A program made the translations under genes and the position numbers. The notes beneath the pieces were generated by a model. The model was not told where the DNA came from. It did not search any database and saw nothing but the letters and a program-made list of their open reading frames with translations. Below, piece after piece: positions 19,237 to 46,397 of a stretch of DNA of 64,000 bases. Where the stretch lies: sequence record OM718002.1; one strand, given 5' to 3'. Numbering within the stretch: position 1 is the stretch's first letter; each line of letters begins with the position of its first letter.

Positions 19237-21402
19237 TTATTTGATAAGCTTAAGTAGAACAGCATTATCAACAAGAGCGCCACGAATAACTTGTAGATAA
19301 GATCCATCAGCAGTGATAATGTACATTTTGTGGGTACGTGCATCATCTGAATCTTTAGAGCTATTTAGACGCTTTGCCATTCCCATGATTACTTGAGTAA
19401 TCTTAGGTTCAGTAAGTTTACTGATAAGCACTGCTTTCTCGGTATAAATATTTAGGCAGGATAGTTCCTCAAGGCGCCAGCCAGTTTGGAAACGCACTGA
19501 TAGATCTAGAATAGAATTACCTTCTTCTGGATCAATATTAACACACATACTCCGTCCAACAATAAACGGAATACTAGCGGTAAATTTATCAGCTACTGAC
19601 TTACCCTTCTTACCGATCAGATATGCGATAAGGTCACCGATATCTTCACAGAAGTCATCAATGGTTACCTTCTGACTCATTGAATCAGCCAGGAACTCAT
19701 TAACTGCACTGGTGAGCCTTTCAACTAGGAACCGATAGTAGCGTTGAGCCAGCTTACCATCTAGCATTAGTTGCTTAAGGCGCTTTGCAATTAGATGCGG
19801 ATCGGGTTCTTTTCGAATATCCTCGATCTCATACATGACTTCAGTTGAAGCATCAAATGGATGGGATGATGCTGCGCGATACTCATGTGCTGGAACTACA
19901 TCATCTTCGCTTAGCTCAAGTGCTTCACGAACTGCATTGAGTGCACCAGCTTCTGCTTCAAGATTATTTGCACAAGCAATATAACCTTCTAGGATAACTG
20001 GATCATGTTCACGATTATCAGTTAACCCAGCATCATTTGGTGAAAACTCTTCGGCTACTTCTTTAACCGGTTTGGCATCACCCATAATGGTAGATAGCTT
20101 ATAACTGGTTGCAGTACGCGCACCACCACCACGATGTGCTTGACGACGGAGATCATCTTGAAGCTCATGCTTTAGATAATCCATTTCCATGTGATTCTCC
20201 CACTTACGATATACTTCATGTACAGTGTTATCAGGCCATTTAGCAAGGAAGCGACAATATACTGCCGGATCCATTAGGATGCTGTATGGATTAGCTGAAC
20301 TAGCAGTACGTACCCAATCAGGTTTATCTGCAACTAGATGAGCAGGTCGGATTTCAATGCCACCTGGATTATAGATAACATCCATCGGACGATCTTTATT
20401 AATTACAAATCCATTGGGTACATAATAGTTCGGATCGAATACGAGTTCTTTCACATCTTGAGGGATGGGTAGATCCGTATTATCATTAGTTACAGTATTT
20501 GCATTTTGTTGTAGTTCAGGTAGAATCATTACATCACCTCCACCAGGGATTGTATCATAACTACTATTTGGAGATACTTCAACAGTGGCACCCCAAGAGT
20601 CTTTAGGTTGCATGACTGGTTTGTTTTCCAGGAAAGGAGAAGAACCAGGTACGTCATATGCAGCATTTGCAATTGATGGACCAGTGTCATGATTAGTTGT
20701 TGGTGTATATGCCCCTGGAATGTTCAGCTGCGGATTAGCCATGGTAGCCGGTTGACCATAGGTCTGTTGGATACCTGCGTTAATTGGAGGTAGTTGTGAA
20801 CTCATGCCAGGACGACCCATTGCTGCACCCATCCCAGGGAAACTTCCAGGCTGTACACCAGGTTGTTGATATCCACCCTGCATCATGGTGTTACCACCCA
20901 TACGCATCTTTTGGATATCTGATTCAATCTGCCCGATTACACCAAGTGCCTGTTGGATATTCGGCATTAGATGTTGAACTAGACTTTGTAGCTGCGGGAA
21001 GGTTTGAGCACATTTACCAACAAAACCAGACCATACTAGAGATGCAGCTTGCTGCATTGCCTGCTGTGGGTTATTCACCATTTGACGATGAATAAATAGA
21101 AACTCTAGAAAGTCAATAACTTTCTGAGCCCACTGCTGATAATAGTTATTCTGAAAACCATTACTAGATAGCAGATTATACGCAAATGCATGAAGCTGGG
21201 TGGTAGTAGCAGCATTTTGAGCATTCAGCCGGAACAGCCCAATTACACCATTGAAATATGGTTGTAGTTGAGGATGTTGTTGATGTGGTGATAACTGTAG
21301 CGGTAGGCTAAACAGATAATTCCCATTAGGTAGGTTAGGATCGAAAGTACTGGTATCTACACTCTCAAAATCGACAGGTAGATTGTACTGTGCATAGTTC
21401 AT
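19237..21402 (-). CDS. Hypothetical protein with Q/G/M/P low-complexity region (gp124-like), 721 aa
   Basis: Long ORF directly downstream of the nvRNAP subunit gene. Confidence 0.75.
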   Translation of the reverse strand: MNYAQYNLPVDFESVDTSTFDPNLPNGNYLFSLPLQLSPHQQHPQLQPYFNGVIGLFRLNAQNAATTTQLHAFAYNLLSSNGFQNNYYQQWAQKVIDFLEFLFIHRQMVNNPQQAMQQAASLVWSGFVGKCAQTFPQLQSLVQHLMPNIQQALGVIGQIESDIQKMRMGGNTMMQGGYQQPGVQPGSFPGMGAAMGRPGMSSQLPPINAGIQQTYGQPATMANPQLNIPGAYTPTTNHDTGPSIANAAYDVPGSSPFLENKPVMQPKDSWGATVEVSPNSSYDTIPGGGDVMILPELQQNANTVTNDNTDLPIPQDVKELVFDPNYYVPNGFVINKDRPMDVIYNPGGIEIRPAHLVADKPDWVRTASSANPYSILMDPAVYCRFLAKWPDNTVHEVYRKWENHMEMDYLKHELQDDLRRQAHRGGGARTATSYKLSTIMGDAKPVKEVAEEFSPNDAGLTDNREHDPVILEGYIACANNLEAEAGALNAVREALELSEDDVVPAHEYRAASSHPFDASTEVMYEIEDIRKEPDPHLIAKRLKQLMLDGKLAQRYYRFLVERLTSAVNEFLADSMSQKVTIDDFCEDIGDLIAYLIGKKGKSVADKFTASIPFIVGRSMCVNIDPEEGNSILDLSVRFQTGWRLEELSCLNIYTEKAVLISKLTEPKITQVIMGMAKRLNSSKDSDDARTHKMYIITADGSYLQVIRGALVDNAVLLKLIK

Positions 21403-24621: not shown

Positions 24622-24656
24622 GATCTTAAACTTTTTTTAATGTAATACAACATAAA

Positions 24657-24676
24657 GCCCTCCCCGAAGGGAGGGC
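24657..24676 (-). terminator. Capsid gene terminator, cUUCGg loop
   Basis: GCCCTCCC-TTCG-GGGAGGGC-TTTATG on the - strand. Confidence 0.82.
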
Positions 24677-24685
24677 CTATGTCTG

Positions 24686-24766
24686 TTACTCTTCTAACTT
24701 CCGGGCATTACCGTCTTCCAAATAACGGATAGTCCCATTTTCTAGATAACGGTAACCCTTTCCAGC
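24686..24766 (-). other. In-frame 26-codon extension after the capsid UGA (candidate readthrough tail AGKGYRYLENGTIRYLEDGNARKLEE)
   Basis: Translated by hand; open from 24766 to TAA at 24688-24686; internal peptide repeat; no ATG or RBS of its own. Confidence 0.6.
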
Positions 24767-27010
24767 TCACGGCTTAAGATCAGCAAGCTTACCGTTGAAC
24801 TGAGTTTCGCCCATGACTTTCTGGAAGCCAGTGATCTTGAACTCTAGCGCGAACGGAATGTTGTTGACGTGTAGGTTGAACGGAATGGCCGCGATTTCGC
24901 GAGTAACCTGGTGACCACCACGAGTGATCGGTAGGTCAGCGATAACAGTAGATACGTAGAAGAACTGGCCCCAGGAGAGGATGTCGTTTTCTTGTTGTAC
25001 TGCGCGGGTCGGAATTACAACTAGCTTACCATCAAATAGCTGGTTGTTGGTGGAAACGATATCGTACTTGAGATAAGCACCTAGAGTACGGTCGTCACCT
25101 TTAGTCATTAGATAGTTAGCAATCTCTTTGTCGGAGCAGAAGAGATACATCGGAGTTTCATCCTGGTTACCGGAGATAACACGGAAGGCAGCTTCAATGT
25201 TGGAATCACGGTGAGCCGGGAATAGCTCAGCTTTAACACAGTTTAGGATCGCAGCGCAAACGTCGTCCCAACGATCTTTAGACTTGATGGTGTCGATGAC
25301 TTTCTCAAGATCTAGTTCTTTGTAACGATAGGTCGGACGCATTACAGCGGATAGTGCACCTTCGATGATACCAAACTTCGGACGGTTGTAACCATTGTGT
25401 ACAACTTCACGTAGTTGAGCAAGGTAGTTAAGCATGCGCTTAACAGCGTTGTTGCTGTTACGGATGTTGGTGTTAACAGTTAGAGCTTTAACAACCTCAC
25501 CCGGACCTTCATCGGTCATGGTGTCCATCGGTAGAGTTACAGGAGCGTGCATCGGGATCGGATGACGGAACTGTAGTGCACGGGTCTGTAGTAGGTGACC
25601 ACGCTGACGACGGTTAGTGTTGGTGAAGCGAGTATCTAGTTCGAAACCGATAACAGCTAGGTCAGTTAGCTGATCTAGAATAGCTTTAACAGCCGGGTCA
25701 GCATTATCCATTACCTGGCCATCTTCGTTTAGAACTTTATCGACGTAAGTGTCGGTAGCACCAAACTTAGAATCGCCTTTGGATAGGCTGATAGTACCAC
25801 CAAAACCAACGCTTAGACGTAGGCTTAGTTTAGCAGTCTTAAGGTCGTTAATAACGCCATCAGCTGAACCGTCGATGAAAGTGGTATCGCCACTAACAAC
25901 AAGGTCATCGCTATCGAAACGGATAACTGCGTTCCGGGTATCACCAACTAGATCGGGCTGGAACACAGCGCGAGGTAGACGGTCAACCTTGAACTTAACA
26001 ACTTTACCGCCGAGTAGAACGAATAGGTTCTTTAGACGACCAGCCGGATCAATGGTGTCAGAAACTTCAAGCATGCCACGCTGAATGAGTAGGTTAGCAT
26101 TGGAGTTACCCATTAGATCAAGACGTACGTTCGCTTTTAGCGGAGCAGTAGTGATAGTTAGGTTCTGCTCGTTCTTGATGGTGTACGGAGGAACAAGAGC
26201 CGGGTCTACGAAGAAGTCAGCATTGGAACCAGCCGGATCTAGGGCAGGAATTAGTGCAATGCTTTCGTCGTCGAGGATGGAAGGATCACGATAGGCTTCT
26301 ACCATGTTCACTTCTTCGTTATCCATCTTAACGCCGGATACTTCGTGGTAAACGTCTTTCATTACAGCGATGTAAGGAAGAACCTGAACAACACCACCTT
26401 CAATCGGGTTGATAACGGTGGTCGGATAGATACGCTCAGCGAATTCATCCTGACGGCTAGCAGCTAGGTTATAACCAATAGTTACAACACGGAAATCACG
26501 CTGTGACTTCTCGTTATAGTTCTCTAGGCCAACACCATTTTCGAATACTTGAATGCCACCAGCAGGGCCATTGAACTGATGCTGTACAACCTTAACATGA
26601 TCTTCATTAGAAGCTTTAGCTTTGGTAATACCACGTAGTGCACGGATATATTTAGTTTCATCAGCACAGGCGATAGCAGCCATGGTAGCAGCAGTGATTT
26701 GGTTCTCACGGACACGTTCTTCACGAGCACGTACTTGAGGATCACTGGAACTTACTCGTTCGAAACCATAGTCGTTAACGAGCATTTGCATTTTGTTATA
26801 AATTGCAGCGGCATCTTGAATGTCGGTAGCTTGCACGGTACCGAAGTTTTCATGTGAAATGCTGCTAATAAGGGAACGACCTTGACTAACAACGCTGTCA
26901 TTTAGACCAATTTCACTTTCTAGGCGGCCAATGAAATCTTCCATTGAGAAGACTTCGTAATTCTTTTCGCCTTTGTGTTTAAACAGTTCTCTTAGGGCAT
27001 GTACGCTCAT
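24767..27010 (-). CDS. gp120: Major capsid protein
   Basis: 747 aa; GLE163|NY prohead-protease site; strong high-expression codon bias. Confidence 0.93.
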   Translation of the reverse strand: MSVHALRELFKHKGEKNYEVFSMEDFIGRLESEIGLNDSVVSQGRSLISSISHENFGTVQATDIQDAAAIYNKMQMLVNDYGFERVSSSDPQVRAREERVRENQITAATMAAIACADETKYIRALRGITKAKASNEDHVKVVQHQFNGPAGGIQVFENGVGLENYNEKSQRDFRVVTIGYNLAASRQDEFAERIYPTTVINPIEGGVVQVLPYIAVMKDVYHEVSGVKMDNEEVNMVEAYRDPSILDDESIALIPALDPAGSNADFFVDPALVPPYTIKNEQNLTITTAPLKANVRLDLMGNSNANLLIQRGMLEVSDTIDPAGRLKNLFVLLGGKVVKFKVDRLPRAVFQPDLVGDTRNAVIRFDSDDLVVSGDTTFIDGSADGVINDLKTAKLSLRLSVGFGGTISLSKGDSKFGATDTYVDKVLNEDGQVMDNADPAVKAILDQLTDLAVIGFELDTRFTNTNRRQRGHLLQTRALQFRHPIPMHAPVTLPMDTMTDEGPGEVVKALTVNTNIRNSNNAVKRMLNYLAQLREVVHNGYNRPKFGIIEGALSAVMRPTYRYKELDLEKVIDTIKSKDRWDDVCAAILNCVKAELFPAHRDSNIEAAFRVISGNQDETPMYLFCSDKEIANYLMTKGDDRTLGAYLKYDIVSTNNQLFDGKLVVIPTRAVQQENDILSWGQFFYVSTVIADLPITRGGHQVTREIAAIPFNLHVNNIPFALEFKITGFQKVMGETQFNGKLADLKP

Positions 27011-29991: not shown

Positions 29992-30579
29992 TTATGTCGT
30001 ATGGCTAATATGCTAGTGAATAACGAATAAAATCGATTATAGAGCAAATTAGAAGGTATTAAAGGCATAAAGAAAGTCTATCTCTAGACTTATTATTTTT
30101 AATTAAAAAAAAATATAATCTATACTGTGTCTCCTTTTAGGGAGACAGTATGTATTAGCTAACGCTATTAGAATAATGCTAATATTGTTTATTATTAGAA
30201 TAAGGATATACCTTCGGTATAGTTTATTATGAAATAAAAGCCCCTACGGGGCGATCCGATTCATCAGTTCCACATTAGGTAATATTCATGAGTAATATTT
30301 GATTACCAGTATTACTCAATGATACTGGTAATAATATACTAGGTTATTAACAATATGTATTGATTATTCTGATTAAGTCAAATTAGTTAATAAACAAATC
30401 AATTATCAACGAGTGATAACTGGTATTGATTACTAGCTAAAGAGATTAATTAGGATATCTACATGAGGAGTCGCTACCCCATGTATACTGGAGTGTCTCT
30501 TTAGCGGGAGACTTAACTCCACTTGGGAGCCGCTTTAGCGGGCGGCTCTCACTTAAACAAAAAAAGAATTCAGATAAGT
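29992..30579. other. Non-coding, AT-rich, hairpin-dense block (candidate origin or ncRNA locus)
   Basis: No ORF of 60 aa or more; lies between convergent terminators; at least seven inverted repeats. Confidence 0.45.
30499..30542. repeat. Direct repeat CTTTAGCGGG x2, each spanning the loop of a hairpin
   Basis: Copies at 30499-30508 and 30533-30542, in stems GTCTC/GAGAC and GAGCCGC/GCGGCTC. Confidence 0.85.
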
Positions 30580-30599
30580 CCCTCTCCTGAAGGAGAGGG
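30580..30599 (-). terminator. Intrinsic terminator
   Basis: CCCTCTCC-TGAA-GGAGAGGG next to the 30608 stop. Confidence 0.72.
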
Positions 30600-30607
30600 G
30601 TTGTTTA

Positions 30608-30913
30608 TCATAGGCTTCTCCTTTCGGTTACATAGAACTTCTTCTGATCCATGTCAGTGTCCGTTACTATGAAATTGTCGAAGGGGTTGATGGATACGGC
30701 TAAACTTGCGTTGTTGACGTATCCTATCGTAGGACCAGCCCAATAACCAATGAAGTGACCTTTACGATCTCGACATTGGATAACATTATCAGCGTGTATT
30801 TTCGCAACTGACATGCTATGGGTTGATCCATCGGGTCTCTTGAAAAAGAAACCCACATCCTGCATTCTGTGCAGGTCAGGGCTAACATTGTTAGCGGTAA
30901 CTGGAATTAACAT
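30608..30913 (-). CDS. Hypothetical protein, 101 aa
   Basis: GAGGA RBS; structured upstream region. Confidence 0.65.
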   Translation of the reverse strand: MLIPVTANNVSPDLHRMQDVGFFFKRPDGSTHSMSVAKIHADNVIQCRDRKGHFIGYWAGPTIGYVNNASLAVSINPFDNFIVTDTDMDQKKFYVTERRSL

Positions 30914-31043
30914 GATGGTTCCTCTTGTTAATCCAAGCCCATTTGGGCGAAAATGTTGAGTATTTTTTACTCAACGGCATATAGCCCTACTGTTGCAGCA
31001 GTAGGGCTAATTCTTTTATTCTTAAATGTTTAACTGAATAAAT

Positions 31044-31065
31044 GCCCTCTCCCGAAGGAGAGGGC
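31044..31065 (-). terminator. Intrinsic terminator, cUUCGg loop
   Basis: GCCCTCTCC-CGAA-GGAGAGGGC after the 31079 stop. Confidence 0.78.
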
Positions 31066-31078
31066 TTATGTCGTTGAT

Positions 31079-31354
31079 TTATTTAACCAGCGATGGTTCC
31101 CTAATACGAGAGATGCATAGATAATTACTATAATCGCTAGGGTCGTACTCATCATACCCTAGACAACTTGTATGGATATATTCAGTACTGATATTAATCA
31201 TATCAAGAGTAATACCATCACCCCATTTCTTAGTTGCCATCTTGATAATATCGGCGATAGTATTGGCCACATAACAATCACCCAAGACATAAAAGGTATC
31301 TTCGGTATCATCCGGACGAAAATAACGAATACCATTCTGTGTATATTCACCCAT
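31079..31354 (-). CDS. Hypothetical protein, 91 aa
   Basis: GAGGA RBS; 1 nt from the upstream small ORF's stop. Confidence 0.7.
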   Translation of the reverse strand: MGEYTQNGIRYFRPDDTEDTFYVLGDCYVANTIADIIKMATKKWGDGITLDMINISTEYIHTSCLGYDEYDPSDYSNYLCISRIREPSLVK

Positions 31355-31355
31355 G

Positions 31356-31499
31356 TTAATTATCCTCTTTTCCTTCTTGGGTATGATGAGCGGGCTCTAC
31401 CCAGTAAAAATCAATAAACAGATCAACTGGTTCACAGCCGACCGCCTCACTGTCATCGGCCCATTTACTTTCATCTGCGATAATTTCTTCATTGGTCAT
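31356..31499 (-). CDS. Small acidic protein, 47 aa (below ORF-track cutoff)
   Basis: AAGGAG RBS then MTNEEIIADESKWADDSEAVGCEPVDLFIDFYWVEPAHHTQEGKEDN*; translated by hand. Confidence 0.65.
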   Translation of the reverse strand: MTNEEIIADESKWADDSEAVGCEPVDLFIDFYWVEPAHHTQEGKEDN

Positions 31500-31538
31500 T
31501 TGTATTTCTCCTTATTTACTATATTGAATATTGTTTAG

Positions 31539-31751
31539 TTACATAGTCCAATTAGTGGCTTCATCAACCATGTCAGCTGCTTCTTTATCAGAAGCATTCC
31601 AGAGTTTATCAGCCCATTCTTTATCCATTTCATTTTGGATATTTTCAAGACGCATGTAATTATGCCATGCCTGACCCAGGCGAAGATTCTTATTATTTTT
31701 GTAATAAATTCCAAACTCACCACGAACTGATGCAGGAATTGAAATAGTCAC
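31539..31751 (-). CDS. Hypothetical protein, 70 aa
   Basis: GTG start overlapping the upstream stop (GTGA); RLGQAWHN motif. Confidence 0.65.
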   Translation of the reverse strand: MTISIPASVRGEFGIYYKNNKNLRLGQAWHNYMRLENIQNEMDKEWADKLWNASDKEAADMVDEATNWTM

Positions 31752-31909
31752 TTTATAATCTCCTTAGTTACTATCTGACGTGCTTCTTTATAAGAAATAT
31801 TCGGATTATCATTGATGTATTTAAGAACTTTCTGATGTATAATGTTCTCTCGCTCAGTTAGTTCTTTTACTACTCTTTTAAAATAACCTGGTGATCGTTT
31901 CATAGTCAT
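31748..31909 (-). CDS. Small basic protein, 53 aa (below ORF-track cutoff)
   Basis: MTMKRSPGYFKRVVKELTERENIIHQKVLKYINDNPNISYKEARQIVTKEIIK*; ATGA and GTGA coupling at both ends. Confidence 0.65.
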   Translation of the reverse strand: MTMKRSPGYFKRVVKELTERENIIHQKVLKYINDNPNISYKEARQIVTKEIIK

Positions 31910-32133
31910 GGTTCTTCGATTAACAAGTTATTTGCCTCGAAAAAGAATGGGGCTGACCAGCTATAATCTGGTTCATTTACCAGTTTTACACTGTTCTTGG
32001 TTTTGATAATCTTGCGATCATACCGCCAGTTTTGTGGTCCATGTTTAGGAATAGTGTAGTATTCACCATCGGGTAGATTAGTGGCTTTTTCCCATCCGAG
32101 TTCTTTAATACTAAACTTTTTATCAGTTGTCAT
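31906..32133 (-). CDS. Hypothetical protein, NLPxG-HGP family copy 1
   Basis: Start moved to MTTDKK (AAGGA RBS); paralogous to 32489-32752. Confidence 0.65.
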   Translation of the reverse strand: MTTDKKFSIKELGWEKATNLPDGEYYTIPKHGPQNWRYDRKIIKTKNSVKLVNEPDYSWSAPFFFEANNLLIEEP

Positions 32134-32196
32134 TTTCTTTATTTCCTTGCTGTCATGAAACCACCCGGTGGCCGTATCAAGCTGCGTCCCCATGGT

Positions 32197-32481
32197 TTAT
32201 ACTGCACGTGGGATCACTGATATCTCAAGAGTCAGATCAGCCGCGTCCAGTAGGTTTACCAGGGCGTCCAGAGAGAACTTGTCAATCTTGCCTTTGAGAA
32301 GATCATTCAATCTCGGTTGCGTAACATGTAGGCGAGCAGCAGCGTCTTTTTGCGGAAGATCCCAGCCCTTTATAGTACGGGTGAGAGCCCGCATGAGTTG
32401 GGAACGGATACGTAGGTTTTCAGTTTCTTTTGTCGAGTCAACTAGTGTATCCCAGACACCGGGAGTGCATTCGTTTGCCAT
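32197..32481 (-). CDS. XRE/HTH_37-type helix-turn-helix protein, HigA-like antitoxin
   Basis: VWDTL..ENLRIRSQLM..QKDAAARLHVTQPRLNDLLKGKIDKFSLDALVNL matches the bacterial HigA2-like pattern; GAGGT RBS; about 50% GC by hand count. Confidence 0.82.
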   Translation of the reverse strand: MANECTPGVWDTLVDSTKETENLRIRSQLMRALTRTIKGWDLPQKDAAARLHVTQPRLNDLLKGKIDKFSLDALVNLLDAADLTLEISVIPRAV

Positions 32482-32488
32482 TTATTTA

Positions 32489-32752
32489 TTACCTCTTGAG
32501 GTAAATGCTCGGATAATAAACTACATTATATTTAAAGAAATCACTTACCTTGAATTTTATGTTCGGTGCAGTGATTAGATAACAATAATCACCATCAACC
32601 ATAACGCGTCGATCATGGCTATATACCCTAGGACCATGTAACGGAGAAGTTACATAAATTCCATTGGGAAGATTCCGTAAATCGTCTTTATTCAGAAACT
32701 TACCATTAGGATTTATAGTTAATGGATAACAACCAGGATTAAGTTTATGCAT
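32489..32752 (-). CDS. Hypothetical protein, NLPxG-HGP family copy 2
   Basis: GAGGTG RBS; NLPNGIYVTSPLHGP...DRR. Confidence 0.65.
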   Translation of the reverse strand: MHKLNPGCYPLTINPNGKFLNKDDLRNLPNGIYVTSPLHGPRVYSHDRRVMVDGDYCYLITAPNIKFKVSDFFKYNVVYYPSIYLKR

Positions 32753-32768
32753 ATTTCACCTCTTTTAT

Positions 32769-32793
32769 AAACCACCCTTATATAGGGTGGTTT
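32769..32793. terminator. Bidirectional terminator-like hairpin
   Basis: AAACCACCCT-TATAT-AGGGTGGTTT; the long T-tract is on the + (antisense) side. Confidence 0.7.
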
Positions 32794-32799
32794 TTTTTT

Positions 32800-33075
32800 C
32801 TATTGACCAATATACGTGCTGGTGTATAATTCAATGGTTGGTTTATGAATGGTCAGATTATATTTCTTAGCTAAATCATCAATATCCCTGGAACAATCAA
32901 TGAATTTGCCAGTCTCTCGATAGCGCATCACCCATGAACCCCGAAATGGTGCATCATCCAATGGATTAATACCATATTCACGACATATCACAATTGCTTC
33001 ATGTCGTGGAGTAGCACCAGTAGTGACAAAGTGATTTTCATAAACTGGGATCATCGATACATCTTTATTGCTCAT
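32800..33075 (-). CDS. Hypothetical protein, REYGINP family copy 1
   Basis: GAGG RBS; paralogous to 34069-34320. Confidence 0.7.
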   Translation of the reverse strand: MSNKDVSMIPVYENHFVTTGATPRHEAIVICREYGINPLDDAPFRGSWVMRYRETGKFIDCSRDIDDLAKKYNLTIHKPTIELYTSTYIGQ

Positions 33076-33116
33076 AATAACCTCTCTAAAATTACCTGAA
33101 GGGATATGTATGATAT

Positions 33117-33614
33117 TTATTTTTGTTTTTGACTGATCATGGAGGCATTAGTGAAGTAATATAACGCGTGTTTCCAATCTTGAGGGTCATATGTGCACTT
33201 ATGTGCAATCACATAAGCACCATCAATTTTTTTGAACAAGCGTACCATGATCACCTCATCCATATCAATCCCGTTATGTACAGTTTGATAATTCAGTCTC
33301 ACCAACATGTCATCTACATTGGTTTTCAATTGGAGACCGTCTTTGAAGAAATCACGAATACCATCCATGATTTGTTCATTACGAGACAGTATGTTTTCAG
33401 AGATCTGTTCGAATATACCCCTTGCGCCGATTAAACGTAACTGGTCGTAATTGGGTTCACCCATACAGATGGCTTCATCATCATGGTTACACATCTTCTC
33501 CAGTAGAACAATAGGGTTATAATCCCAAGCAACCCCACCAGTTACAACAGAGGTCAAATAGCCATAGAGACTGAGTTCACTGTCACGCTCATTTGCAGGA
33601 ATCATGCGGTTCAT
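33117..33614 (-). CDS. Hypothetical protein, about 165 aa
   Basis: Start moved to MNRMIP (GAGGA RBS). Confidence 0.65.
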   Translation of the reverse strand: MNRMIPANERDSELSLYGYLTSVVTGGVAWDYNPIVLLEKMCNHDDEAICMGEPNYDQLRLIGARGIFEQISENILSRNEQIMDGIRDFFKDGLQLKTNVDDMLVRLNYQTVHNGIDMDEVIMVRLFKKIDGAYVIAHKCTYDPQDWKHALYYFTNASMISQKQK

Positions 33615-33649
33615 AATTAACGATCCTCGTATTGGTGTTGCAGCATAGC

Positions 33650-34033
33650 TCAGCAAGTCTCTTGAGCTTTCTCAAAACTAGCCATCGAGCGGGTGCGCGC
33701 ACGCTGTAGAATAGACAAGCCGTATTTTTTGAACTTCTTCTTGTGGATGAAACCAAGGCGTTCGTAGATGAAGTCTTTACGGTCGGCGCGAGGTTTACCA
33801 TCAGCTACGATACCACGGTCGAAAAGAGCCCAGAACAGAGCGCTTTCATCATGCAGGTAGTTGGCCATTTCCTGAGGCCACTGAACTGCGCATAGAGCAA
33901 CGATTTGTTCAAGTAAACCACTATCTGAGATGGCATAGTACTCACGACCCTGAACATAGTTCATTTTGTCGAAGTTGCACATAGCCAGTTTGCCAGTACC
34001 CTGGTTGATTTTCTTTTGAATGTGTTCGTTCAT
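33650..34033 (-). CDS. Hypothetical protein, 127 aa, elevated GC
   Basis: AGGT RBS; about 47% GC by hand count. Confidence 0.7.
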   Translation of the reverse strand: MNEHIQKKINQGTGKLAMCNFDKMNYVQGREYYAISDSGLLEQIVALCAVQWPQEMANYLHDESALFWALFDRGIVADGKPRADRKDFIYERLGFIHKKKFKKYGLSILQRARTRSMASFEKAQETC

Positions 34034-34068
34034 GGTTTGACCTATTTTCAGATTTGGATTAATTATAG

Positions 34069-34320
34069 CTAGACGAAGGTATTGCGTTCGAATTGGATGG
34101 AATTACGTTCAACAATATCGTTGAGGTATTTATCATTGTCGATAAATTCCCCAGTGAGCATGTTACGCAGAACCCAGTTCCCCCGAAGTGGTATACCGCT
34201 GTTAGGGTTGATCCCGTATTCACGCATCAAAATCCGACGATTGTGGTCAACACCTGGCTCCATGTAAGATTCACTGATAAAACATTCCACCATGTTGATA
34301 ACTTCTTTAGATTCGCTCAT
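34069..34320 (-). CDS. Hypothetical protein, REYGINP family copy 2
   Basis: AAGGA RBS; REYGINP..P.RG.WV.R...TG.FID. Confidence 0.7.
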   Translation of the reverse strand: MSESKEVINMVECFISESYMEPGVDHNRRILMREYGINPNSGIPLRGNWVLRNMLTGEFIDNDKYLNDIVERNSIQFERNTFV

Positions 34321-34391
34321 TGACTTATTCCTTCTTTTGCAGGTATTATGTAATACGATAATGGATTATGGCTTTAACCATCAGATCCTTT

Positions 34392-34814
34392 TCACGCAGT
34401 TGGTTTGAATGGATTTGCACTACGACTACGTTTTTGATATGAAATTAGTGCATCCCATACATTATCGGCTGATACATATTCAGGCATAGCTTTTTCATCA
34501 TTGTAACTGACACGGTATGCCTTAGCCACACCTGTGCTATCTACAATGTGTACTTTTTCAATGACAAATGCTTTTCCAGAAGGCCCAGGGATATGTAATC
34601 CTCTTTTAAAAAGTTCTTCAAGAATGCGTTCTAATGCAATTTTAGCATTAGGGTAATCATTATCAAGTGACTTAATACCACCTTTAATTTTATTACCTAG
34701 GTCACTTAGTGCCTTTTTAAAAACACTAACATCATGATCAAAACATTCGAGAGTGTGATCGAAGTTTTGCATGAGCGCTATTAGTAGACCATTAGGAAAT
34801 ACTACTTTTGACAT
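34392..34814 (-). CDS. Hypothetical protein, 140 aa
   Basis: AGGTG RBS; operon context. Confidence 0.7.
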   Translation of the reverse strand: MSKVVFPNGLLIALMQNFDHTLECFDHDVSVFKKALSDLGNKIKGGIKSLDNDYPNAKIALERILEELFKRGLHIPGPSGKAFVIEKVHIVDSTGVAKAYRVSYNDEKAMPEYVSADNVWDALISYQKRSRSANPFKPTA

Positions 34815-34824
34815 ATATCACCTA

Positions 34825-35181
34825 TTAGTAAACAGTTGGGAATGTTTGTAGGAACCAATCATTAATACGTGTATTAACACTAGTTCCATGTTCAGGTGCT
34901 ACTTTAAAACCAGCAACGATATCCTGTAACTCTTCAGTGAGTTTGTTGTGCACTTTACCTTCACAATCGATAAAGTCTTCTGCGGTTGGCATAACCTCAG
35001 CGCGAATGACAGAGGCGCGCTTAGAAAGCATTGTAAGAATTTCATTAGACACTGAAGCAGCATTACGCAACTTATTGATTTTCACATCAATAACAGTTTT
35101 GTGATAGATTTTACCAACTGCGCACATGGCAACTGAACCAACAAAAATACCAAGATAGAGTGATACTTTATCAATATTCAT
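34825..35181 (-). CDS. Small protein with N-terminal membrane anchor
   Basis: MNIDKVSLYLGIFVGSVAMCAVGKIYHK. Confidence 0.7.
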   Translation of the reverse strand: MNIDKVSLYLGIFVGSVAMCAVGKIYHKTVIDVKINKLRNAASVSNEILTMLSKRASVIRAEVMPTAEDFIDCEGKVHNKLTEELQDIVAGFKVAPEHGTSVNTRINDWFLQTFPTVY

Positions 35182-35242
35182 TTTGTATACCTATTTACGT
35201 TTATTGAAGTGATTAAAAAATATTACGATGTAGAAAATAAAA

Positions 35243-35260
35243 GGGAGTCCGAAGACTCCC
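35243..35260 (-). terminator. Intrinsic terminator, cUUCGg loop
   Basis: GGGAGTC-CGAA-GACTCCC with T-tract on the - strand. Confidence 0.78.
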
Positions 35261-35268
35261 ATTATCAG

Positions 35269-35709
35269 TTACACATCTGACACATCATCGAACAGATCAA
35301 GTTGTTTCCGATTACGTCGTTCTTCTTCTTCGATACGACGATTCTCTTCTTCAATCTCTTTCTGCCTTTTGACAAGCCGCCTGTGCAGACTCATTTGCCA
35401 TGCAGTATCATAACGGCATCGCACTGACTCAATATATTTAAGCCCTACTTCATTAATGCTCTCAAGAAGATCCAGTGACACAAGTGTCTCCTTGGAAGCA
35501 TTAATACTAGCTTTAAGATAATGAATCATTGCAGTTGCAGGGTGGAATGGTAGCTTATCTACATCGATCGTTTTCTGATAGGCTTTCAATCTATGTATAA
35601 TAATTCGTCCATAATAGAATTCATAAAGTTTTTCTCTAGAATCCCAAGCAAGCTTACCGAGTACGGCTCCACTTACCATCCCTAATGTAAGAGATAGCTT
35701 AGAGTTCAT
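35269..35709 (-). CDS. Protein with N-terminal membrane anchor and C-terminal charged coiled coil
   Basis: Start moved to MNSKLSLTLGMVSGAVLGKLAW (AAGGA RBS); C-terminal KRQKEIEEENRRIEEEERR. Confidence 0.65.
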   Translation of the reverse strand: MNSKLSLTLGMVSGAVLGKLAWDSREKLYEFYYGRIIIHRLKAYQKTIDVDKLPFHPATAMIHYLKASINASKETLVSLDLLESINEVGLKYIESVRCRYDTAWQMSLHRRLVKRQKEIEEENRRIEEEERRNRKQLDLFDDVSDV

Positions 35710-36016
35710 TGTTAATTGCATCCTTAATCCAGTTACGGATTTTTGATTTAATTCGATGTTTATCACTGATGGTGTTAAACATATTCAATCCATCATTAAT
35801 GACATCCATAAGCTCTGCTTCAATTAAGTCCGCCATTACTTCCACGGTGCAATTATCTGAATTAGTTTTGATATGCTCAGAATAGCCCTTTACTTTTTCA
35901 CGGATACTCTTTTCTAATTTAATCTCATTATAAACAGTCACACCAACTTCGAACACGTAGATGGTGCCGGCCAGCATGAGACCAGTTTTTACAACATTGC
36001 CGATAATGGAAAGCAT
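35699..36016 (-). CDS. Small protein with N-terminal hydrophobic anchor
   Basis: AGGA RBS; GLMLAGTIYVFEVGVTVY. Confidence 0.7.
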   Translation of the reverse strand: MLSIIGNVVKTGLMLAGTIYVFEVGVTVYNEIKLEKSIREKVKGYSEHIKTNSDNCTVEVMADLIEAELMDVINDGLNMFNTISDKHRIKSKIRNWIKDAINNEL

Positions 36017-36061
36017 GATAATATCCTATTAGTTAATGAATGTAGATTTATTTCGATTATA

Positions 36062-36223
36062 TTAAAACTTGATATTTAGAACACGTTTAGCTATTACAAT
36101 ACCAACATATACTCCTAATGCTATCTCCGCATATTTGGTGATGACATTTACGATCTTCTTAGGTTTAGGTGCCTCAGGTACATCCGCGATAAGTTTTTGA
36201 AGTTTAACTTTATCAATATTCAT
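36062..36223 (-). CDS. Small membrane protein, 53 aa (below ORF-track cutoff)
   Basis: AAGGA RBS; MNIDKVKLQKLIADVPEAPKPKKIVNVITKYAEIALGVYVGIVIAKRVLNIKF*; translated by hand. Confidence 0.65.
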   Translation of the reverse strand: MNIDKVKLQKLIADVPEAPKPKKIVNVITKYAEIALGVYVGIVIAKRVLNIKF

Positions 36224-36264
36224 TTGTATTTTCCTTTTTACATTAATTTAAGATTTAACAAACT

Positions 36265-36304
36265 CATTCAAATATAATTTTATTATTGTAATTATATTTG
36301 AATG
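36265..36304. repeat. Perfect 15-bp inverted repeat with 10-nt spacer
   Basis: CATTCAAATATAATT (36265-36279) and AATTATATTTGAATG (36290-36304). Confidence 0.85.
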
Positions 36305-36321
36305 GGGCCTCAATGAGGCCC
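36305..36321 (-). terminator. Terminator-like hairpin
   Basis: GGGCCTC-AAT-GAGGCCC after the 36331 stop. Confidence 0.6.
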
Positions 36322-36330
36322 TATCCATTT

Positions 36331-36669
36331 TCACATCTTACGAACTGTATCGAATACTTGATTCGTATAATCATCACCATAAATGGTCGACAGCTTATCA
36401 CGAATTACATCCAGTCGATGTTTTTCAATATTGCTCTCAGCAACGGCACTGTCCGTTGTCTCAGTCATTGCAGTATTGACGAACATCATGAACTCATCTG
36501 ATTCGCCATACTCTTTTGAAATACTTTTAAACTGATCCCTGAAACCCATGAGTTTGTCAAAGTTGGCTTTAGTTTCCTTAGCCTTCTTATAGATAACATA
36601 CCCAGTTCCAGCCAGTGATGCAGTGGCCAGAAGAAAAGATACACCTTTTGCAATCGTATTGAATTTCAT
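36331..36669 (-). CDS. Small protein with N-terminal membrane anchor
   Basis: AGGA RBS; GVSFLLATASLAGTGYVIYKKAK. Confidence 0.72.
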   Translation of the reverse strand: MKFNTIAKGVSFLLATASLAGTGYVIYKKAKETKANFDKLMGFRDQFKSISKEYGESDEFMMFVNTAMTETTDSAVAESNIEKHRLDVIRDKLSTIYGDDYTNQVFDTVRKM

Positions 36670-36703
36670 AATAAATATTCCTATTTACTAATATTAAAAC
36701 TAT

Positions 36704-37150
36704 TTAATAGTTTCTGAAATGTTCACAAGTCGTTACTTCTTTCAGTCGTTTGATGATGTAATCTCGACTTTTATTGAATTGAAGTTTCTTTGCGTCATCC
36801 AGTTCATCCCATTGTGTAATTCTGGCCAGTTCAGGAACATTGTCATATTTTGCTTTGTTAAGTTTTTTAATCATGTCCCATACATAGCAACCTTCGATAA
36901 ACCACAAAAGACTCGTGTATGTATCCTTGTCAATTAAATTTACTCCATAAAGACTAAGGTCAACCTTGGCTTCTTCTGCCATTTTAATGGTTTTCTTATA
37001 ATTATCAAATACATTGTGGAGGTTATGCTCTTCGCCACTGCTATCACAGTTTTCAATAGCTTTCATCAACTCCGGAAATGTATCACTATAGAACTTGATC
37101 AATTTACGAGTAATCGCCTCTTGCACTTTCTGCTTTTTAGTCTTTGCCAT
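36704..37150 (-). CDS. Hypothetical early protein, 148 aa
   Basis: AGGTGG RBS; first gene after an early promoter. Confidence 0.72.
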   Translation of the reverse strand: MAKTKKQKVQEAITRKLIKFYSDTFPELMKAIENCDSSGEEHNLHNVFDNYKKTIKMAEEAKVDLSLYGVNLIDKDTYTSLLWFIEGCYVWDMIKKLNKAKYDNVPELARITQWDELDDAKKLQFNKSRDYIIKRLKEVTTCEHFRNY

Positions 37151-37208
37151 TTTATTTCCACCTATTTACATTAAGTTGTATGATAATGTTTACAGTATTG
37201 TCACAAAT

Positions 37209-37216
37209 GTAATATA
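37209..37216 (-). promoter_or_regulatory. Early promoter core TATATTAC
   Basis: TTTTAAACAG-TATATTAC on the - strand, in an intergenic gap after a terminator. Confidence 0.72.
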
Positions 37217-37248
37217 CTGTTTAAAATGGTTTGAATATACGACATAAA

Positions 37249-37268
37249 GCCTTCCCCTGAGGGAAGGC
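37249..37268 (-). terminator. Intrinsic terminator
   Basis: GCCTTCCC-CTGA-GGGAAGGC; TTTATG follows on the - strand. Confidence 0.78.
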
Positions 37269-37273
37269 CAATG

Positions 37274-37762
37274 TTAAACCGATGAATCTATCCACGGTGG
37301 ATAAACAACCACAATCTGGTTAGGCATGTGATTAGACCAATCTTCAATGATAGTTCTAACATCAGAGAAATCTAATCCACCATTAGCACACCCTAGAGGT
37401 GGTATGATAATTTTCCAATCTGGATGAATACAGTCTTCTTCATTTTCCGCAGAATCCGATACGTTCTCCATCATCCACTCTAGACCACGTTCAATGAAAC
37501 TAATTTGAGATGGGTTCCGCCAGTTATCCTTAGTAGGAAACATCATGAAACGTTTACCATCGGATGCTTTGTAAATAACCGGATTACCAATAGTAATAAT
37601 TCTCTTTTTGCAATCGTGTTTGTATCTTTCAAAAAGTTCAGGATACTTTTCTTTAAACGATTTGGCTAAACCAGCGCCCATGACGCCAACAACATTAACA
37701 GTGATTAGATAAAGATCACCAGGTACATTGAATATATCTTTACCTATAATAAATTCAGCCAT
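37274..37762 (-). CDS. Macrodomain ADP-ribose hydrolase, DarG-like (gp104-like)
   Basis: NVVGVMGAGLAKSFKEKYP, FPTKDNWRNPS and IPPLGCANGGLDF motifs. Confidence 0.85.
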   Translation of the reverse strand: MAEFIIGKDIFNVPGDLYLITVNVVGVMGAGLAKSFKEKYPELFERYKHDCKKRIITIGNPVIYKASDGKRFMMFPTKDNWRNPSQISFIERGLEWMMENVSDSAENEEDCIHPDWKIIIPPLGCANGGLDFSDVRTIIEDWSNHMPNQIVVVYPPWIDSSV

Positions 37763-43946: not shown

Positions 43947-46397
43947 TTACTTAATGGCACGATTCACAGCAGTGTTAATTGCATTGGTAAGAGCTACAAT
44001 GTAATCAACTAGAACGGTGTGGTTTTCAGCCGATTGGCCAACAACTTCCCATACTGCACTAGCTAGTTGCCGGACTTTCTTTTTACCGGCTTTACTATCC
44101 ATGCTAGCCACTTTAGAGATATCACGGTTAGCTTGGTCAAGACGACGTACACCGCGGTTACCGCTAACTTTTAGAGAGGCATTACCAAGACCAATTAGAA
44201 CTTTAGAAAGTTTCATTAGTTCAGTAACGTCCTTACGGCTAACTTTAGCAGTAGTAGTACCGGTAGCACCCCATTCACCAGTTGGAAGTGCAATAGCAGC
44301 TAATCGTTCAATATCTTTACTAGTGCGACCAGTTACATCACGGCCAGACTTCTCGAAGGTAAAACTACCTTCTAGTTTTCCACTGATAAATGAACTCTCA
44401 GGATATTTCTTAACAGGTACTTCTAATTTAGTTGCTTCTTCTAGAGCCTTATCAATAGCTTCTTCACTATCAGCTTCAATAGCAGTTGATAGGTGACCAA
44501 CTAAACGTTCGATGTATTCACCATCGATTTTGAAGCATTTGTTAATAATATCGCTAATACGACGAACTTCTCCAGCAACACCGCGTACTAGATTATCATC
44601 ACCTTTTAGAATACCATTAATTTTGATTTCTTTATTTTCAAAATTATCAGTATCTTTAAGCTTAACTAGAAGTTGGTCAGCTTTAGTATTAGCTGCGGCT
44701 AGTTCTTTTTGGTTAGCTTTAACATGGATGGATGCATTTGCACCTTCAGCAATGTTGTCGATAATATTTCGAACAAACTTACCAATAGTGCTATTAAATG
44801 ATTCTAGCGAAGTAACCATCGCCTTATAGTAATCTTCTAGATTACCATAACCATAATCTTCCATTGCTGGAACACCAGGTGAATAGACATCAAAGGCGTT
44901 ATGCAGGCGTTCTAAACAGCTATTAGCATGTACGATGAACTGAGGACTATATTGCTTATGTTCTAGGCCATAATGTAGAATCTCAAGCATGGATTCATTT
45001 GATGCCTGCTCTTCAAGTAATTGACCAATGGTTTTCTTACCATCTTCAATGTCATCTTCAAGCTTATCGGCTTCTTCAACTGCCTCATCAGCAGTCTCGT
45101 CAGCTTCTTCAACATCATCTTCAGTTACTTCTACGTCAACATCCGGGATGTCAATTTCACCTTCAGCTAACTTTTCTTCGATGTCATCTTCTGAAACGTC
45201 ATCATCTGTTTCTGCAACAATTGTTTCACTGTCGTCTTCAACAGCACCTTCTTCAATTGTTGGTTCGGAAATAGTAGATGCCGTTTCGGTTTCAGCAACT
45301 GTTTCTTCAGTTTCAGCTTCATTGATTAATACATCAGTAGAATCACTGTCATCATTAGTTAATTCTTCTTCAGCTTCATCCCGAACTTCTTCCAATTCGC
45401 TTAAGCCTTCTTCAGCTACTTCTGCTGTTTCGGCAGCTTCTTCTACAATTGGATCAGTTACAGCTACTTTTTCATCAACTGCTACGATTTCATCTGGTTC
45501 AGCTTCAGCAGGAACACTTTCAGATTCCGCCTCTACTACTTCAGCTACTTCACTATCAGTTGTATCCGGCGTATCTTCTACGGTTTCAACAACTTCTGTT
45601 TCAGCATCAGCTACAGCTGGTTCAGTAATTTCGACTTCTTCTGTTTCAGTGATCTCTGTCTCAGGTTCATCATTGGAACTTTCATCAGCAGTTGTTTGCT
45701 CAGCACCGGCTTCTTCAGGAGTTACATCGTCATCAATACCAGGGACTGCTTCACTTACAACTTCACCAGCATCTAACACTTCATCTGGTAGTGTATCCAT
45801 GGTTGATGAAACAGGTTCATCACCAGCTGGAAGTTCCTCAGATAGTGGTGCAGGCGGTGGAGTTTCGTCACCAAGTGGGGTTTCTTCAGTGGGGGTTAAT
45901 TCCACTGCTGTTTCACCAGGTGCTTCTGCAACAGGTACTAGTTCAGTATCATCAGCCGCATCTTGTGCAGCTTCAATAATTTCAGTGGTTGAATCTAAAA
46001 CCTCTTTACCGCCTTCAGAAATTGTACCGATTTCTTCAGCGATTTCAGCTTCAGCAACTTTAACTGCTTCTTCGCCTTCTTCGACACTAGTGGTAGCTAG
46101 CGGTTCAGGAATACTTTCCTCAACAACAGTTTCTTCTGGTACAACTTCTTCAACAATTACTGCTGACTTATCAGCAGCATGTGCTGTTTCTTCATGTTCT
46201 TCAGCAGAGATAATATCAGTATCTGTTTTAACAGTTTCATTCTCAATAGTTGCAGATGCATCATTATCTTTCTTTAAATCTTGAACTAGTTCATGATCAT
46301 CTTTAACAGATGTCTCGACTTTGGATACATCCTGTTCCACAGCCGTACCATCTTGGTTCTCAAGGCTGGCTACATATTTGTGAATATTTACCATCAT
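43947..46397 (-). CDS. gp97: Inner-body/ejection head protein with very long acidic propeptide
   Basis: 816 aa; D/E-rich N-terminal ~480 aa; SLE532|S site before a folded C-terminal domain. Confidence 0.78.
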   Translation of the reverse strand: MMVNIHKYVASLENQDGTAVEQDVSKVETSVKDDHELVQDLKKDNDASATIENETVKTDTDIISAEEHEETAHAADKSAVIVEEVVPEETVVEESIPEPLATTSVEEGEEAVKVAEAEIAEEIGTISEGGKEVLDSTTEIIEAAQDAADDTELVPVAEAPGETAVELTPTEETPLGDETPPPAPLSEELPAGDEPVSSTMDTLPDEVLDAGEVVSEAVPGIDDDVTPEEAGAEQTTADESSNDEPETEITETEEVEITEPAVADAETEVVETVEDTPDTTDSEVAEVVEAESESVPAEAEPDEIVAVDEKVAVTDPIVEEAAETAEVAEEGLSELEEVRDEAEEELTNDDSDSTDVLINEAETEETVAETETASTISEPTIEEGAVEDDSETIVAETDDDVSEDDIEEKLAEGEIDIPDVDVEVTEDDVEEADETADEAVEEADKLEDDIEDGKKTIGQLLEEQASNESMLEILHYGLEHKQYSPQFIVHANSCLERLHNAFDVYSPGVPAMEDYGYGNLEDYYKAMVTSLESFNSTIGKFVRNIIDNIAEGANASIHVKANQKELAAANTKADQLLVKLKDTDNFENKEIKINGILKGDDNLVRGVAGEVRRISDIINKCFKIDGEYIERLVGHLSTAIEADSEEAIDKALEEATKLEVPVKKYPESSFISGKLEGSFTFEKSGRDVTGRTSKDIERLAAIALPTGEWGATGTTTAKVSRKDVTELMKLSKVLIGLGNASLKVSGNRGVRRLDQANRDISKVASMDSKAGKKKVRQLASAVWEVVGQSAENHTVLVDYIVALTNAINTAVNRAIK

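Follow-up and report, generated by a model that had tools for sequence, protein, structure and literature searches.

Why would a lytic phage keep the antitoxin half of a bacterial toxin–antitoxin (TA) module without the toxin? The question is raised by a small gene in a 64-kb stretch of sequence record OM718002.1 (hereafter the window), over which alone the phage genome was visible to us. Over the 4 kb tested, the window matches Pseudomonas phage Churi, a phiKZ-like jumbo phage, at 100% identity; its identity to phiKZ is ~98%. At 32197..32481 on its minus strand, stop codon included, lies an open reading frame with an ATG start that encodes a 94-residue helix-turn-helix (HTH) protein of the HTH_37 family; its counterpart in phiKZ is PHIKZ114, and we refer to the product as gp114. 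An initial annotation had described it as an orphan antitoxin homolog of bacterial type, rich in guanine plus cytosine (GC), lying between two paralogs and apparently acquired horizontally. In this study, we confirm that description, identify the donor type, both junctions and the direction of transfer, and find it somewhat probable, if far from assured, that gp114 serves as a decoy antitoxin protecting cytoplasmic phage translation.

gp114 belongs to a family of antitoxins whose genes follow those of toxins of the RelE superfamily. It scored 97.3 bits against the Pfam model HTH_37 (PF13744; cutoff 27), with residues 14-89 aligned to positions 3-79 of the 80 in the model, and matched PHROG 2339 with an expect value (E) of 1.7e-29. 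Neither gp114 nor the bacterial antitoxin had a match in NCBIfam, and the only PADLOC match of gp114 was PDC-M64C (E=0.03). A search of 5.8 billion protein sequences returned 1382 matches; outside phages, the top matches lie at 80-86% identity, and Pseudomonas accounts for the overwhelming majority. Each of the 12 loci inspected first has a gene for a 108-109-residue gp49 protein (PF05973) ~106 nt upstream of the gp114 homolog, and the same pairing is found at two further loci, L038 (gp49 106 nt upstream) and L040. When one genome per species was scanned, gp49 lay directly upstream in 14 of 19 bacterial loci, including every locus of at least 50% full-length identity whose upstream DNA was present. 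PF05973 toxins are ribosome-dependent RNases acting on messenger RNA (mRNases) with a toxin-first gene order, and one member acts in an abortive-infection toxin–antitoxin–chaperone (TAC) module (PMC11980606). The more specific label "HigA2" of the initial annotation is right only at the superfamily level, since the V. cholerae HigB-2 family is PF06296 and the gp49 partner is PF05973 (PMC11980606). With gp114 or the family profile as query, V. cholerae HigA2 appeared neither among PDB sequence matches with E<=1 nor among the listed 50 best matches by fold.

The gp49/HTH_37 module is common, as an accessory element, in the very species that the phage infects. Its antitoxins are 64-86% identical to gp114, and the 12 loci are situated in chromosomal islands (with DUF1173, integrases and MvaT) or on small Rep3/ParA plasmids, where PLSDB labels the copies [quoted passage not shown]. 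The P. aeruginosa antitoxin P0405 and the toxin variant P0391 each occur on at least 1000 P. aeruginosa contigs, and another toxin variant occurs on 426. These contig counts identify the module as a common accessory element of P. aeruginosa; among species-representative genomes scanned by pattern, no P. aeruginosa locus came up. In PADLOC, the partner toxins gave weak NsnC-like matches (E 1e-3 to 6e-6), which we did not count as a sign that the module belongs to a known defence system. The island neighbours at L040 had no PADLOC or Pfam matches, leaving a "defence island" setting unsupported. CrlTA of P. aeruginosa WK172 was considered as the donor module and rejected, having proteins of 121/107 residues and overlapping genes, as opposed to 108/94 residues and a 106-nt spacer here. 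Some database entries carry the phage gene itself at 94-100% identity under bacterial names, on tiny contigs or a 281,755-bp contig; these (L016, a 380-bp contig of an Agrobacterium sp. assembly, and P0002-P0004) are phage DNA within bacterial assemblies and not bacterial homologs. In a separate observation on the bacterial genes, the first 63 nt (21 codons) of the antitoxin genes at L002, L004 and L008 are conserved even synonymously, with a synonymous divergence (dS) of 0.16-0.25, whereas synonymous sites in the rest of these genes are saturated. This hints at constraint at the nucleotide level, such as RNA structure, translational control or an internal regulatory site.

Comparison with these loci shows what was taken. 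L038, L039 and L040 align with the window at 87-88% nucleotide identity over 353 nt (~32148-32499; blastn), L040 being the complete P. aeruginosa chromosome CP113974.1 (88% nucleotide identity), whose antitoxin is 86% identical to gp114. In alignments, homology to the bacterial loci stops sharply outside ~32148-32499 on both sides. From blastn and alignment, the captured segment of bacterial or mobile-element DNA spans ~352 bp at 32148..32499 (minus strand), with bounds good to a few bases. Besides the antitoxin gene it holds an 18-nt 5′ leader with a Shine-Dalgarno-like AAGAGG (32482..32499, minus strand, from alignments), inside which the stop codon of the neighbouring gene gp113 now lies, and 49 nt of the 3′ flank of the bacterial antitoxin gene (32148..32196, minus strand), which now form the first ~15 codons of gp115 as annotated. 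The capture did not extend to the toxin gene or to most of the spacer, homology ending 18 nt upstream of the ATG. Relative to the gp49-HTH_37 pair of P. aeruginosa (CP113974.1; antitoxin P0405, toxin P0271/P0391), gp114 has kept the length, the HTH, the leader and the ribosome-binding site; it differs in having no toxin, 106-nt spacer or promoter, in a GC content of 49% against 56%, and in the remodelling of its N-terminal 21 residues.

No toxin is found elsewhere in the phage. As the initial annotation had noted for the immediate neighbours, a gp49/HigB/RelE-like toxin is absent from the whole 64-kb window when searched by tblastn with the partner toxins of the bacterial homologs (best E ~0.7, which is noise). 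Among 50,697 phage records, the partner toxin matched no Pseudomonas phage; its matches were Mycobacterium prophages, Zymomonas elements and few others. Given the absence of the toxin from the window and from all Pseudomonas phage records, gp114 is an orphan across the whole phiKZ group.

Three sets of observations place the capture in time. In OMKO1, which at 91% identity in the region is the most divergent Phikzvirus lineage, the junctions are identical; the gene is present and intact in 47/47 Phikzvirus records; and PhiPA3 and EL have no HTH_37 gene and one copy each of the paralog that flanks gp114. Taken together, these indicate a single capture in the ancestor of the genus Phikzvirus. 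A pre-insertion "empty site" was sought in PhiPA3 and EL, where the regions are too diverged for reconstruction. Six extra records that seemed to be Phikzvirus genomes without the gene were discarded, as they match only the left end of the query. Rather than a phage-only clade with native codon usage, we found the phage proteins nested inside Pseudomonas TA antitoxins: in a neighbour-joining tree, the phiKZ-type and OMKO1-type proteins form one clade, sister to P0005/P0009, with chromosomal antitoxins of P. aeruginosa and P. nicosulfuronedens next out and the phage clade deep inside the Pseudomonas radiation.

Base composition gives the direction of transfer. The gene has 49.1% GC (140/285) and 45% GC at third codon positions (GC3) in a window of 37.7% GC, a value reached by only 0.8% of 285-nt stretches. 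At sites where the bacterial sister and the outgroup agree, so that substitutions can be polarised, the phage copies show 21-23 GC->AT changes against 2-4 AT->GC changes, and the sister branch 3 changes in all. Such an excess is amelioration towards the AT-rich phage genome and establishes that transfer ran from a bacterium or mobile element into the phage. The horizontal origin of gp114 is firm.

The gene has been under purifying selection in the phage lineage since. Nei-Gojobori counts between phiKZ-type and OMKO1-type copies gave 13 synonymous and 7 nonsynonymous changes, for a ratio of nonsynonymous to synonymous rates (omega) of 0.16. It is also transcribed early. In the source data of Gerovac et al. 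(Fig. 3b; PMC10914614), PHIKZ114 RNA rose from 0.6/0.3 before infection to 502/451 after 2 min and 1792/1716 after 10 min; the canonical early genes PHIKZ005-023 run the same course, while PHIKZ001-004 stay at 3-25 (PMC10914614). Rising by 2 min like the canonical early genes, PHIKZ114 is an immediate-early transcript, a designation that concerns the transcript only. The gp114 protein was not found in the accessible part of the mass-spectrometry tables of that study (PMC10914614).

That the gene is a neutral passenger, a functionless leftover of horizontal transfer, would fit a small gene among accessory genes with no reported phenotype, and is highly improbable and effectively excluded by its intactness in 47/47 Phikzvirus, an omega of 0.16 (13 synonymous changes separate the lineages), a residence long enough for its composition to ameliorate strongly while the gene stayed free of decay, and high early transcription.

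What selection has preserved can be read from the architecture of the protein. The AlphaFold2 model of gp114 has a mean pLDDT (predicted local distance difference test) of 86.6, with the core at 93-98 and residues 1-20 at low confidence. Codons 1-21 (32419..32481, minus strand) form an N-terminal segment predicted to be disordered (pLDDT 48-65), which is the toxin-contacting part in solved relatives; codons 22-94 (32200..32418, minus strand) form a predicted DNA-binding and dimerisation core with the long helix alpha2, the HTH (~32296-32352), alpha5 and an extended C-terminal tail. The modelled helices span residues 17-39, 44-50, 55-62 and 71-80, followed by the tail. In Foldseek, the best solved matches were the HTH_37 proteins 2a6c and 2o38, followed by HipB, M. 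tuberculosis HigA2 and S. pneumoniae HigA. The former two, NE_1354 (2a6c) and 2o38, are the closest folds, with template modelling (TM) scores of 0.70-0.86, root-mean-square deviations of 0.9-1.4 A and 34-40% identity; both are structural-genomics proteins, and unlike gp114, 2a6c is without most of the N-terminal segment.

The nearest solved toxin–antitoxin pair is HigBA of S. pneumoniae: the partner toxin matches 6af3_A (E=0.017), and the antitoxin profile is collinear with 6af3_B. S. pneumoniae HigA contacts HigB through an N-terminal strand, alpha1 (including W10) and alpha2, and dimerises through a C-terminal strand (PMC7984235). gp114 shares this order of N-terminal strand/helix with Trp10, alpha2, HTH, alpha5 and C-terminal strand (6AF3/6AF4; PMC7984235), at a Foldseek TM of 0.55 over 80-84 columns, and its W10 corresponds in the collinear profile match to the W10 contact seen in 6AF4 (PMC7984235). 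It differs in having no partner and in coming from another host phylum, and its sequence match to this antitoxin is non-significant alone (E ~0.3). V. cholerae HigA2 offers a second parallel, in that its disordered N-terminal segment alone neutralises the toxin, its C-terminal HTH domain dimerises and binds DNA, and its family is toxin-first (PMC5416850); its disordered segment is longer (36 residues), and its toxin HigB-2 belongs to PF06296 as opposed to PF05973.

The two parts of gp114 have evolved very unevenly. Among bacteria, no part of the family is better conserved than the N-terminal 24 residues, and bacterial pairs have 2/12 to 2/24 of their differences in residues 1-21. Between gp114 and its nearest bacterial sister, 9/14 differences fall there (Fisher p=3e-4), as do 5/7 between the phiKZ-type and OMKO1-type proteins (p=0.006). 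In three-taxon distances, the nonsynonymous divergence (dN) of codons 1-21 is 0.179 on the phage branch and 0.032 on the bacterial branch, compared with 0.044 and 0.052 for codons 22-94; in comparisons among phages, codons 1-21 have an omega of 0.44 and the remaining codons one of 0.06. At eight positions (2, 5, 7, 8, 12, 17, 18, 20) gp114 has residues found in none of 111 close bacterial homologs, which are 86-100% invariant at these sites, and position 12 carries a different replacement in each of the two phage lineages. Residues 22-94 hold zero phage-unique states against the same 111 homologs; the recognition helix is identical to that of host antitoxins, and residues 22-85 are unchanged between phiKZ-type and OMKO1-type proteins. 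The family-invariant anchors E4, V9, W10, L13, E19, N22 and L23 and the length of 94 residues are kept. The model thus retains the antitoxin layout, an N-terminal segment followed by an HTH, with its anchors in place and 8 near-invariant positions changed.

Orphan antitoxins of phages are an established means of counter-defence, as known from Dmd, AdfN and AdfM. gp114 fits this kind: it is a homolog of a host antitoxin, has no toxin, is transcribed early and resides in a lytic phage. AdfM (phiKZ gp104) is a proven orphan DarG2-like antitoxin (PMC13309987), and like it and AdfN of T4-like phages (PMC11825919), gp114 is a toxin-less antitoxin homolog in a lytic phage. The difference is one of mechanism. 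AdfM and AdfN are enzymes that reverse DNA ADP-ribosylation by DarT, AdfM working inside the phage nucleus, whereas gp114 is a non-enzymatic HTH protein that would sequester an mRNase in the cytoplasm. The window encodes an AdfM homolog as well, a 162-residue macro-domain protein (37274-37762, minus strand; Pfam Macro, 30 bits), ~4.8 kb from gp114 in the same leftward gene block. T4 Dmd is a phage antitoxin against RnlA/LsoA (cited in PMC13716836). An early phage protein, it stands in for a host antitoxin that is labile and so blocks a toxin with RNase activity, as gp114 would; unlike gp114, which is 86% identical to a host antitoxin, it is not homologous to host antitoxins.

Closer in sequence are two HTH_37 genes of other lytic Pseudomonas phages. 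gp179 of pf16, a 158-kb myovirus (L036 1962-2279), is the best viral fold match to gp114, and XDJ15184 of HRDY3 is encoded by a 314-kb jumbo phage (L037 1986-2276). Both lie among small phage genes with no toxin neighbour. They differ from gp114 in being only ~44% identical to it and in sitting on separate deep branches, and so are independent captures. Orphan capture of this antitoxin family looks recurrent.

From these data we propose how gp114 may act. An ancestor of Phikzvirus took over only the antitoxin half, together with the ribosome-binding site, of a gp49 (PF05973)/HTH_37 type II module of the sort that rides on Pseudomonas genomic islands and plasmids and is common in P. aeruginosa. 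Transcribed at most 2 min into infection, gp114 would build up in the cytoplasm as a dimer, and we infer that its N-terminal segment and helix alpha2 bind the host gp49-type ribosome-dependent mRNase. The toxin would thus be kept inactive once infection stops the resupply of the labile host antitoxin, to the benefit of the phage, whose mRNAs, translated outside the phage nucleus without protection by its shell, would be spared. Through its unchanged recognition helix, gp114 may also occupy the operator of the module. Such a decoy is the most likely explanation in view of the antitoxin-only capture of a host-common module, its fixation in the genus, purifying selection and immediate-early expression, to which the kept anchor residues, the precedent of AdfM and the independent orphan HTH_37 genes of pf16 and HRDY3 can be added.

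Several points weigh against this explanation. The changed residues at the 8 near-invariant positions fall in the very segment expected to bind the toxin, and could therefore have weakened or abolished its hold on the original toxin. Omega in the N-terminal part is raised and still below 1 (0.44-0.64), a range that adaptation and relaxation share, and the tightest constraint falls on the DNA-binding core. Restriction of phages by a gp49/HTH_37 module would be an extension by analogy, PADLOC matches being weak and no known defence genes adjoining. In the literature, we found no publication on PHIKZ114 and no report of binding, neutralisation or localisation. The remodelling of the N-terminus may reflect retargeting or stabilisation, or instead the loss of toxin binding with the DNA-binding core retained; the counts are compatible with either. 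A fuller version, to which we give slightly less than even credence, would make gp114 the first decoy of a nucleus-forming phage to be a proteic type II antitoxin that works by sequestration, derived from a host gp49/HTH_37 module, remodelled at its N-terminus to meet toxin variants or escape degradation, and guarding cytoplasmic translation.

The retargeting or stabilisation in question would be the work of diversifying selection, which would have reshaped the N-terminus to cover several P. aeruginosa gp49 variants or to evade the proteolysis that makes antitoxins labile. This refines the decoy explanation and is no true alternative to it; we regard it as rather unlikely. In its favour, all 8 phage-unique states lie in residues 1-21 with zero elsewhere, position 12 differs by lineage, and 5/7 lineage differences are N-terminal; the host toxins do vary, with 78% identity between L038-type and L002-type and several variants on hundreds of contigs each. 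The counts are small, at 5 nonsynonymous against 3 synonymous changes between the phage lineages, and fall short of demonstrating an omega >1.

The main rival, which we judge unlikely, is that the toxin role has lapsed and gp114 is now a co-opted DNA-binding regulator, its HTH kept for host or early phage DNA; its targets could include operators of host gp49/HTH_37 modules or other host promoters. The pattern of constraint speaks for it. The HTH core and dimerisation tail are tightest (omega 0.06, with residues 22-85 unchanged between lineages), the recognition helix is the same as in host antitoxins, and the N-terminus, near-invariant in bacteria, is fastest in phages, as expected if constraint from a toxin had been lost. 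GenBank annotates the gene as a transcriptional regulator, and for CrlA, an antitoxin from a different family in P. aeruginosa, the action on phages does not depend on the toxin (PMC9127804). Against a lapsed toxin role stand the retention of all N-terminal anchors and of the exact 94-residue length despite long residence, and an N-terminal omega that remains <1. HTH repressors are not known to take part in phiKZ transcription, which is carried out by the phage's own polymerases. Repressing a host TA operon alone would, moreover, be expected to deplete the antitoxin and so harm the phage.

Also against a regulator, the window contains no repeat like those of the bacterial upstream regions. A GTCGAC repeat, tentatively recognised upstream of some bacterial toxin genes, is without counterpart in the window, where single GTCGAC sites are not enriched (4 found, 5.4 expected), and the true operator may differ. 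The palindrome at 36265-36304, put forward in the initial annotation as a possible target, does exist as a 15-nt perfect inverted repeat with a 10-nt spacer, but its supposed link to gp114 is unsupported: it is AT-rich, 4 kb away and unlike bacterial TA upstream regions. It occupies an AT-rich gap between two small minus-strand genes and partly overlaps a second, GC-richer hairpin at 36299-36327. A temperate repressor of CI/Cro type was likewise considered and rejected, as gp114 lies in a co-directional early block of a lytic phage with no operator-like repeats nearby; its CI-like PHROG matches are weak (E ~1e-3).

The setting of gp114 is a run of small early genes, all pointing the same way, in a lytic jumbo phage. 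Upstream, separated by 7 nt, ends the gp113 homolog (32489..32752, minus strand), of which only the last codons and the stop lie in captured DNA; downstream, after 3 nt, begins the gp115 homolog as annotated (31906..32193, minus strand). Both match phrog_10237 and are only 32% identical to each other, and so are old paralogs. The start of gp115 is doubtful. Its annotated ATG at 32193 lies inside the captured 3′ flank without a Shine-Dalgarno sequence, and the likelier native start is the ATG at 32133 (residue 21), which is preceded by AAGGAAA; the phrog_10237 profile aligns only from residue 21, and the OMKO1 annotation starts gp115 at this internal ATG. The first ~20 residues of gp115 as annotated may therefore be untranslated, or a by-product of the capture.

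Other features of the region stand apart from these questions. Between gp112 and gp113, at 32769-32793, a 10-bp GC-containing hairpin is bordered by a run of A at one end and a run of T at the other; it resembles a terminator that works in both directions and would bound a transcription unit starting with gp113-gp114. An Rfam scan of 30000-37500 gave no match. Sigma-70-type promoters are not enriched in the window (28 against an expected 26.7), in keeping with a phage that relies on polymerases of its own. gp110 (33650-34033) is another GC-rich outlier (46.6% GC, GC3 52%), with zero synonymous differences between phiKZ-type and OMKO1-type, compared with a dS of 0.1-0.65 in neighbouring genes, and gp112-gp115 (31500-33200) show 91% identity between the two phage lineages versus 98.5% just to the right; this mosaic divergence suggests recombination. 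Further stretches in which 285-nt GC reaches at least 47% in the 37.7% GC window are 20561-21085, 24631-26505 and 45611-46105, and could be acquired or otherwise unusual genes.

GenBank labels gp114 only as an HTH, XRE or DNA-binding protein, a label that its origin as an orphan antitoxin corrects. The birth of a putative anti-defence gene can here be followed in unusual detail, from a 352-bp fragment of known donor type, junctions and direction to the remodelling of one interface. What would be new among phage orphan antitoxins, if the decoy explanation is true, is that a nucleus-forming phage took a type II HTH antitoxin directly from a RelE-superfamily mRNase module. Nucleus-forming jumbo phages evade DNA-targeting defences, and their mRNAs and translation stay exposed in the cytoplasm; the history of gp114 suggests that they are under pressure from the ribosome-dependent mRNase toxins that common accessory TA modules encode. 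gp114 is offered as a checkable candidate counter-measure in phiKZ, the best-studied model, and in relatives studied for therapy. If gp114 does act as a decoy, phiKZ-like phages would, with AdfM, be collecting orphan antitoxins as a second layer of counter-defence, and the RelE-superfamily mRNases of accessory islands would be a real selective pressure on jumbo phages.

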